A stretch of DNA of 64,000 nucleotides from Dimorphilus gyrociliatus. Taxonomy: Eukaryota; Animalia; Annelida. How positions within the stretch are numbered: the first letter of the stretch is position 1; every line of letters begins with the position of its first letter. The translations under genes were made by a program, and so were the position numbers. Location: assembly GCA_904063045.1 (NCBI GenBank), contig CAJFCJ010000022.1, forward strand, positions 186,001 through 250,000, written 5' to 3'. This document shows, piece after piece, positions 1,854-3,377 of the stretch. Under the pieces are notes generated by a model. It saw nothing but the letters and a program-made list of their open reading frames with translations. It did not search any database and was not told the DNA's origin.

Positions 1854-3377
1854 TCATGCATTGTACGGTTCCGGTAATTGTTCTTTGCAGGTTAATATTC
1901 CCAAAATAAACTTGATCCCTTTCCTAAAATCATCATCAAGTGTTATGTAAACAACAAACTTCCATAGACAATTACCAATAGCCAACCACATTAAGTAAAA
2001 ATGCAGTTTTCCAGAAGCTTCTTCTCCACCTGGCAGCGTGGACGAATGAATATATAGAGCAAACTATTGGTTAATTGGAAAAAGAAGTTTGGTGGACTGA
2101 ATTTTTCCCCGAGTATTAACATATATAATCTATATGATTTATAGATTGATTATTTAAAATTATCCTATATAGATGTTATATTTGATGGATTTTCCATTAA
2201 GAAAGGAATGACGCAGAGAATATGTAACGTTCCTTGATAATAAAATGTTTCTTATTATTTTACTTTGAATTATTTACTTGTATATAGTCATATTAAACAA
2301 ATAGAAATCGCACGATTTATAAAAAAAGATTGAGCTATGAAGAAGAAGACGGAGAAGTTGATGAAGAGGAAGACGAAGAAGAAGTGAAGGAGAAAAAATG
2401 TTGTAAAACGTTGAAAAATTTGAAAGGGAAAAATGTGTTATCTTTACATTTTAACCTGATCTTTACGAGAGGAATATTTTGTAACAAAAAGGTTAAAGAA
2501 TTGGCTAGATGCCCGAGATAAAGTGTTCCGAATTTGATTTCTAGTTTGCCTTCTCCCCTTTTATTCTCTACCCTTAATCCCTCCCATCATTGATTTTCAT
2601 TCTAGGGGATTATATCGTTCATTCGTCCAAGCCTATGTGTTCATACAACTGCAAAGTGCACCAAGGTATCCAGGACACAAAAAATAGCAGACATAAAGCA
2701 GCGGAAATTGCATATTTTTGCGGTCGTTTCGCCATTTGCGGTATTTTTGAACAAACCCTCTGAGCTAATCTAAAATGTCTTGACCAGAGGAAAGAATTTG
2801 TAACGGCTAGAGCGGCAGTAGGTGGTGTAATCACTAATAAGCCAGACGCTATAAAGTATGCTTTTTGCATTTTCCAGTCAATTAGGCAAATAAAGGCATC
2901 AGGGTAATAGGTTGCTCTGGAAACTCCAAATAAAGGTGGGCAACAAAAACTAAAAGCCGCTATCCAGACAAACATAACCCAACATCGACTTCTCATATCA
3001 GTCATGATTACTCCGTATCTATCCGGTTTATTAACGGCGACGTAATGATCAATACTCATCCACATAAGAGAGTATAGAGAGGCCAGCCAACATATAGCAC
3101 ATAGATAACTTTGTATATGACAAAATGCTGCTCCATATAACCATCCTTGAAATATTCCGTTCCAAGTGACAAATGGAGAAATGATAAAGGATATTAAAGC
3201 ATCGGCTATGCTCATTGAAGTAAAGAAATTACGATTCACGGCTGTAACACCTTCCGATTTGAAAAGAACTAATAAAATAATACAATTAACTAACAATATT
3301 CCTAAACTCATTGCCGTAGAAATAAAGCACTGAAAGTTGAAGATTGGATGGTTAATATCTGTAGTATTACCGGCCAT
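1854..3377 (-). CDS. Orphan rhodopsin-like (class A) GPCR, GPR21/GPR52-like invertebrate type; 2 exons 3377-2633 and 2029-1854 (306 aa)
   Basis: The ORF has TM1-TM6 (SIADAL; WMSIDHY at the DRY position; CCPPLFG; CLIDW; SWIPW) but stops before TM7. A second exon read by hand encodes GGEEASGKLHFYLMWLAIGNCLWKFVVYITLDDDFRKG...PYNA*, i.e. TM7 plus helix 8. The join that best restores the loop uses a GC donor at 2632 and the AG acceptor at 2030. Family name is inferred from motif memory. Confidence 0.85.

Follow-up and report, generated by a model that had tools for sequence, protein, structure and literature searches.

A putative GC-AG intron with a predicted, conserved terminal helix in a GPR52-like receptor gene of Dimorphilus gyrociliatus

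A receptor gene of the annelid Dimorphilus gyrociliatus is interrupted between its sixth and seventh transmembrane segments (TM6 and TM7) by 603 nt whose two ends form an inverted repeat. The interruption can be read as an intron with a GC donor and an AG acceptor, both of them weak, and the repeat is predicted to fold into a helix that closes the intron in this species and in a relative. We propose that an insertion bounded by inverted repeats became a GC-AG intron, and that its weak sites and its length are tolerated by way of the terminal helix, which selection has kept. We give this proposal an even chance of being right.

The receptor gene and its two coding blocks

The gene lies on the minus strand of the window, by which we mean the whole stretch of 64,000 nt that was analysed. 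Its features are listed here by window position, with the basis of each in parentheses.

2633 to 3377, minus strand: exon 1, coding part, reaching from the N-terminus through TM6 into the beginning of extracellular loop 3 (7tm_1 match, dN/dS)
2030 to 2632, minus strand: inferred intron of 603 nt, from GC (2632-2631) to AG (2031-2030) (frame-preserving two-exon join)
2618 to 2632, minus strand: 5' arm of the repeat, intron +1 to +15, containing the GC donor and the TGA at 2621-2619 (inverted repeat, fold)
2436 to 2506, minus strand: stretch of 71 nt unchanged from the relative's locus L016, beginning at the AG 2506-2505 (alignment with L016)
2064 to 2066, minus strand: in-frame TAG upstream of exon 2, its AG a strong-looking acceptor (score 9.5)
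2036 to 2050, minus strand: 3' arm of the repeat, ending 6 nt before the acceptor AG, with its core at 2040-2050 (inverted repeat, fold)
1854 to 2029, minus strand: exon 2, coding part, with the rest of loop 3, TM7, a short tail and the stop at 1856-1854 (dN/dS, orthologue alignment)

A minus-strand open reading frame (ORF; 3377..2619) runs from a putative start ATG at 3377 to an in-frame TGA at 2621-2619. It matches the Pfam profile 7tm_1 with an E value of 1e-29 over profile positions 2-226 of 260; since the match reaches only position 226, the ORF stops after TM6. A second block, which can be read in frame between 2029 and its stop codon (1856-1854), holds a TM7 that aligns with those of orthologues. 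Judged by the 7tm_1 match together with this TM7, the gene is a GPR52-like receptor of the rhodopsin family of GPCRs. The top protein matches of exon 1 come from annelids and molluscs, and the closest named one is an Octopus 'GPR52-like' protein (merely the name given by the source); aligned with GPR52-like orthologues, exon 1 is 45-48% identical. Exon 1 ends in phase 1: its final base, G2633, opens a Gly codon. An initial annotation of this DNA had placed 603 nt between TM6 and TM7, and we found the same separation (2030-2632, minus strand).

Is the gene, split in this way, still functional? The relative that we used for comparison was identified through P0010, a 90%-identical protein on Logan contigs of a related lineage, and its locus L016 carries the whole gene. 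Against L016, exon 1 has a dN/dS of 0.059 (dS 0.81). Exon 2, with a dS of 0.52, has a dN/dS of 0.11 overall and 0.048 over its TM7 part; read in its two other frames it gives 0.46 and 1.8. The stop codon occupies the same position in the window and in L016. Strong purifying selection thus acts on both blocks, and hence the gene is alive and the intervening sequence must be removed. Codon conservation also reaches upstream of the first Met of exon 2, from which it follows that exon 2 is translated as the continuation of an upstream exon. That the insertion destroyed the receptor and that nothing is spliced would agree with a public annotation that stops at the intronic TGA. However, with dN/dS at 0.05-0.11 in exon 2, the stop codon position kept and the same gene architecture present in four taxa, we attach almost no credence to a dead gene. 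The pseudogene that the initial annotation had allowed for is contradicted by these same exon 2 values.

The public protein P0001 (NCBI/UniRef), which is the sole annotated form, has 252 aa: the intronic TGA ends it before TM7. Among annotated products of 32-101 aa, none contains exon 2. When exon 1 and exon 2 were searched separately in the protein collection, we recovered only the genomic ORFs P0010 and P0011 and no spliced product. The public gene model is probably truncated because an intron without a GT donor was missed.

Other read sets placed on the window were the DNA-like contigs of a further relative, X5, and a DNA run of the species itself, X7. Two coral metatranscriptomes gave matches only to a GAA-rich tract (2337-2384) and a CT-rich tract (1577-1610); low-complexity tracts attract coral contigs, which explains the coral metagenome RNA runs, and these do not carry the gene. 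Across all four read sets we saw no spliced joint and no transcript of the receptor gene.

Two observations concern exon 1 itself. The ORF called at L016 begins 16 codons upstream of the Met of the window (L016:2037-2084), and the start codon of the window is putative. In X7, a 60-nt contig with a depth of 35 (window 3241-3295) omits 53 nt of the TM1 coding region, with ends CT..AC, and the contigs adjoining the gap have depths of 132-204. The gap may reflect a minor deletion allele, or else a graph artefact arising at a short direct repeat.

Intron borders and splice-site strength

In a frame test, each GT or GC donor after the WIPWC motif was paired with each AG acceptor. Within the window, the frame stayed open across two exons only for the join from GC (2632) to AG (2030). 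The homologous join is open in L016, where the intron lies at the same place and has 539 nt (L016:2830-3368). This upholds the frame logic of the initial annotation, which had found no GT donor in the workable phases and had joined the GC donor at 2632 to 2030, and extends it to a second lineage; the AGG at both junctions and the in-frame TAG (2066-2064) that it described are also present. The joined reading is ..LQLYEHIG-GEEASGKLHF.., and its loop, YEHIGGEE, fits the orthologue pattern [HY]E..G.E (e.g., HELIHGGE.., YELYLGAEE..). This fit places the interruption at or beside 2633/2029.

The acceptor offers a further comparison. It reads CCAG/G in the window, GTAG/G in X5 and TCAG/G in L016, and in a fourth taxon, known only as the ORF P0011, a Leu codon that necessarily ends in A is followed by GG. 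The AG is therefore kept in four taxa while the bases that precede it vary, as they would before a 3' splice site and unlike coding sequence. GC at +1/+2, AG at -2/-1 and an in-frame join are found in both the window and L016, and on these grounds of sequence GC (2632) and AG (2030) are the most likely cut sites.

Several other borders were tried and rejected. The acceptor at 2064 (AATAG/, score 9.5) was considered with or without an inner exon of 49 nt or 38 nt; X5 has GGG here, L016 offers no counterpart, and all four changes that X5 carries in 2031-2063 would be non-synonymous. A U12-type intron (/RTATCCTT donor; branch TCCTTAAC at 10-15 nt from the 3' end) was rejected by eye, since its donor matches neither the GC site nor the GT at 2646 and its branch motif is absent near 2030. 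A mirtron was rejected on an intron length of 603 nt, pairing confined to the ends and a search of Rfam without a match.

We scored splice sites with crude position weight matrices, which are rough, built from 21 GT-AG introns inferred in the myosin genes of this genome. Scores ran from 4.4 to 10.6 for the 21 reference donors and from 6.3 to 15.2 for all but one of the 21 acceptors. The GC donor at 2632 scores 0.9, below every one of the 21 reference donors, and matches the consensus only at -2, -1, +1 and +5. It is a single transition away from the GT donor type that this genome uses; with C changed to T it would score 5.8, inside the range of real donors. The final acceptor is almost without a pyrimidine tract and scores 1.4 in the window and 5.3 in L016. 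Measured against the reference introns, a donor at 0.9 and an acceptor at 1.4 mean that both splice sites are weak. Candidate branch-point A residues lie at 2051 and 2047, which are 21 and 17 nt before the 3' splice site, and both are conserved. The intron is also about nine times as long as the species median of 66 bp, in a species in which longer introns are more often retained and 944 open-chromatin peaks fall in unusually long introns (PMC7854359).

Two other loci of the same genome were noted in passing. A neighbouring mGluR-type gene (L051 ~1675-2140; G000:C22:263675-264140, minus strand) is also split between TM6 and TM7, with 7tm_3 positions 2-223 within one exon, and its intron is a canonical GT-AG intron (CAG/GTAAGA ... 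AACAG/). A myosin gene (G000:C19:264937-265285, minus strand) has two adjacent copies of the exon that matches Myosin_head positions 174-209, and these look like a mutually exclusive pair.

Perhaps the interruption is not one intron but two? The 71-nt stretch inside it (2436-2506), around which looser conservation extends out to about 2527, is more conserved than the coding exons, whose dS between the lineages is 0.5-0.8. It contains a CCAAT motif, two GTAAAGAT repeats and a GATA-like site, and it holds a candidate micro-exon of 38 nt (2467-2504) followed by GTAAAG (2466). We found in this block no significant RNA structure and no significant pairing with the arms or with other conserved parts; the Rfam search gave a best E value of 0.098, with nothing near gathering scores, and no tRNA was found. 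The block may serve as a micro-exon, as a splicing element or as a regulatory element within the intron.

If it is a micro-exon, two GT-AG introns would be removed, one from a donor at 2646 (GTATGA) or 2649 to the AG at 2506-2505 and the other from the GTAAAG at 2466 to the AG at 2030, leaving 2504-2467 between them; the terminal helix would then bridge the two introns and loop the micro-exon out. This path, which the initial annotation did not contain, is open in frame in both the window and L016. The micro-exon sits inside an unchanged run that starts exactly at the AG, a possible upstream branch motif is kept as well, and the donor GTAAAG, at 4.9, scores in the low-normal range. However, the first donors score only 0.8 and -5.2, and the acceptor falls from 2.1 in the window to -8.1 in L016, where it follows a purine-rich run ending in AAG. 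The path would also drop LYEHIG, which matches the orthologue motif LQ[LV][HY]E, and a helix that looped the micro-exon out would favour skipping and so shift the frame. Moreover, three-exon paths are often open by chance: we counted 122 and 158. We regard the micro-exon path as distinctly unlikely and continue with a single GC-AG intron.

Terminal helix

The arms of the terminal repeat are 15 nt long and complementary at 14 of 15 positions (93%), with 12 perfect pairs in succession, just as the initial annotation had described them. The predicted helix closes the intron in both the minimum free energy (MFE) and the centroid folds of the window and of L016. When the intron was folded with its exon flanks, the pairs at +5..+15 had a probability of about 1.0 in both species, and the two outer G-C pairs had probabilities of 0.94-0.96 in the window and 0.65 in L016. 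For the terminal duplex we obtained energies of -24.2 kcal/mol (window) and -21.3 kcal/mol (L016), compared with -1.9 to -8.3 kcal/mol for the terminal duplexes of 17 canonical myosin introns of the same genome. One of 3,960 pseudo-introns had a duplex as strong as -24.2 kcal/mol. At one fixed register, two of 200,232 pseudo-introns reached 13/15 and none reached 14/15. Such a stem is rare for any one intron, yet a whole-genome scan, covering tens of thousands of introns, could meet a few by chance, and hence the weight rests on conservation. It is conservation in relatives, and not single-sequence statistics, that makes the stem more than chance.

The 5' arm is identical to that of L016 at all 15 positions and sits in a run of 51 nt (2606-2656), unchanged in the same comparison, that spans the junction. 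The 3' arm is identical at 14 of 15 positions; the one change, A2039 to T, breaks a pair beside the existing mismatch and leaves a core of 11 bp. No difference is listed for 2034-2052 in X5, and in the fourth taxon the 3' arm reads ..FIHSS.. in the protein ORF. At a dS of 0.5-0.8 the remaining intron is saturated, mostly at about 50% identity with many gaps, and despite this interior both 11-nt cores of the helix are invariant. Among the conserved pieces of the intron, only the two arms pair significantly, and they do so with each other. The comparison with L016 revealed no compensatory substitution in the arms, the sole change being the one that breaks a pair. Neither this point nor the 51-nt run had appeared in the initial annotation. 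Since conservation at the 5' end extends over 51 nt and the likely branch region lies partly in the 3' arm, the two arms could be conserved for separate reasons.

An ordinary weak GC-AG intron would be read in just this way: the terminal repeat would be a relic or a coincidence, the 5' arm would be a splicing enhancer and the 3' arm a branch site, and the helix would have no role. The lack of covariation, the pair lost in L016, a 5' conservation that far exceeds the arm and the chance occurrence of such stems in a whole-genome scan all agree with this account. However, it leaves two 11-nt cores invariant in a mostly saturated intron and a helix that dominates the folding ensemble in both species, and the donor is too weak for its consensus alone to explain. 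We think it unlikely that the helix has no role. The structure-assisted splicing suggested by the initial annotation stands in part: folding predicts a helix in both species, with a conserved core, but covariation is absent.

What would a helix at this position do? Because it covers the donor bases, U1/U6 pairing would require it to unfold or be rearranged; for the same reason it could also slow splicing and favour retention, which would give the 252-aa six-TM form. A helix over +1..+6 should compete with U1/U6 pairing and might hinder splicing, which counts against a helping role. A regulated switch would make use of this effect: the helix would mask the donor and leave a retained intron with a 252-aa six-TM protein ending in GLDE, and once opened it would allow the seven-TM receptor. 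The helix does span the donor (+1..+15), the read-through end GLDE-stop is identical in L016, the public annotation has only the 252-aa form, and long introns are retained more often in this species (PMC7854359). Conservation of GLDE-stop, however, is explained by the 51-nt unchanged run and is not coding, and the strong selection on exon 2 shows that the seven-TM form is the selected product. A switch of this kind would be, in our estimate, quite improbable.

Origin of the intron and comparison with known systems

The initial annotation had pointed to orthologues as a check on the intron. We found it present in the relative L016 and absent from three orthologues of other animals: P0002 and P0007 are single ORFs on genomic contigs with no intron here, and the Ridgeia orthologue P0004 is uninterrupted over residues 1-301, which include TM6, the loop and TM7. 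Since all three are intronless at this place, the intron is a lineage-specific gain.

We searched the genome (77,897,245 bases in 349 contigs, about 30% GC) for related sequences. With the 603-nt intron as query, the 78-Mb genome returned no second copy and only a low-complexity match. The 11-nt arm core occurs 44 times in the genome, compared with 18 times for a control word, and no other inverted pair of the core was found nearby any occurrence. Without a second copy of the intron or of its ends, a transposon origin is unsupported, and the MITE or Introner ancestry put forward in the initial annotation loses the related copies that it would call for. Terminal inverted repeats of the kind that transposons carry are present (15 nt, 14/15). 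The junction direct repeat is AGG in the window, AGGC in L016 and TAGGC in X5; it is short, and its 3' copy does not adjoin the arm. An insertion is argued for by only these terminal repeats and the short direct repeat (AGG/AGGC). An old insertion would agree with the inverted ends, the direct repeat and the lack of the intron in orthologues; sister copies, if there were any, would have decayed beyond recognition at this divergence.

Our preferred reading, in which an inverted-repeat-bounded insertion became a structure-assisted GC-AG intron, would run as follows. Before the sampled Dimorphilus lineages diverged, the gene for a GPR52-like receptor, ancestrally without introns, would have taken up about 0.6 kb of DNA bounded by inverted repeats. 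The point of entry, among the loop-3 codons, would have been a site resembling a proto-splice site (..ATAG^G..), and a short direct repeat would have remained at each junction (AGG; in relatives, AGGC). Removal at GC (2632) and AG (2030) would restore ..YEHIG-GEEASGKLHF... A helix of 11-15 bp, between +1..+15 and the stretch before the acceptor, would put the donor beside the branch and acceptor region and so enable removal, and selection would have kept the core of the helix since the insertion. In this reading, where exactly the cuts fall, that the helix helps and that the DNA arrived by insertion are our inferences.

Removal might instead be guided by structure and dispense with the spliceosome, as has been proposed for euglenid nonconventional introns, with the cuts falling anywhere in the AGG(C) repeat. 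Two weak splice sites, a helix that joins the ends and a direct repeat that leaves the borders ambiguous would all suit such a process. Against it, the borders can be read as GC..AG, all four taxa keep the AG, and 17-21 nt upstream there is an A that could plausibly serve as the branch point. In addition, we know of no non-spliceosomal pathway of intron removal in animals except the IRE1 cleavage of XBP1. We consider removal outside the spliceosome highly improbable.

Intron gain is rare in animals, and its mechanism is still debated. The receptor intron is a dated case that can be compared across lineages, being absent from other annelids and molluscs and present in four related lineages, and it combines weak, non-consensus splice sites with a conserved helix that is predicted to clamp its ends. 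If the cut is at GC..AG and the helix is needed, inserted DNA can become an intron in a bilaterian by bringing its own end-pairing, an origin known so far mainly from protists and one tunicate. It would also mean that a spliceosome tuned to introns of 66 nt can handle one of 600 nt through RNA structure. The public gene model, a six-TM protein, is probably truncated, and hence annotation would be missing such introns; our literature search found no paper on introns of this kind in annelids. More tentatively, and with more doubt than confidence, we suggest that nerve-signalling genes of D. gyrociliatus, or of Dinophilidae more broadly, may contain recently gained introns that form a class of their own, with ends set by a terminal RNA helix and not by the pairing of U1 with a GT donor. 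The receptor intron may be a long, old member of such a class, which could be removed by a spliceosome tolerating GC or GG donors or by a structure-guided pathway new to animals.

How does the receptor intron compare with introns already described? It resembles the U2-type GC-AG introns of animals in its GC at +1/+2, its 3' AG and its phase-compatible exons. Known GC donors, however, make up for the C at +2 with a near-perfect remainder (AG/GCAAGT), whereas the donor here, at 0.9, has no such compensation.

The Introner and MITE-like introns of Micromonas, Aureococcus, Amoebophrya and Fritillaria borealis are likewise lineage-specific, with terminal inverted repeats and a junction direct repeat, and they carry a gc or gt donor at the end of the element and take their ag from the duplication, an arrangement that the receptor intron may share (PMC11282704; PMC7789003). 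They are multicopy elements, whereas the receptor intron has neither a second copy nor a second inverted pair of its core, and the receptor insertion, with a dS of 0.5-0.8 between its carriers, is old, unlike those cases.

In the nonconventional and intermediate introns of euglenids, too, a helix near the ends joins them and the junctions have repeats resembling target-site duplications, the intermediate ones having GT/GC-AG borders as well as the end helix (PMC4770533, PMC3935182). Their helix is short and fixed, +4..+6 pairing with -8..-6, and they belong to a different kingdom from the receptor intron (PMC4770533, PMC3935182). The receptor intron combines a predicted helix that would join its ends with non-canonical borders; since its borders can also be read as GC-AG, the intermediate type is the one that it resembles.

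The 'zipper' stems that run from donor to branch point in yeast, reportedly described for RP51B by Goguel and Rosbash in 1993 and by Libri and colleagues in 1995, are alike in that they shorten the effective distance between donor and branch and help a long intron in a species of short introns. Those stems are internal to the intron and clear of the splice-site bases, and they serve introns with consensus splice sites, whereas the helix predicted here covers the donor itself.
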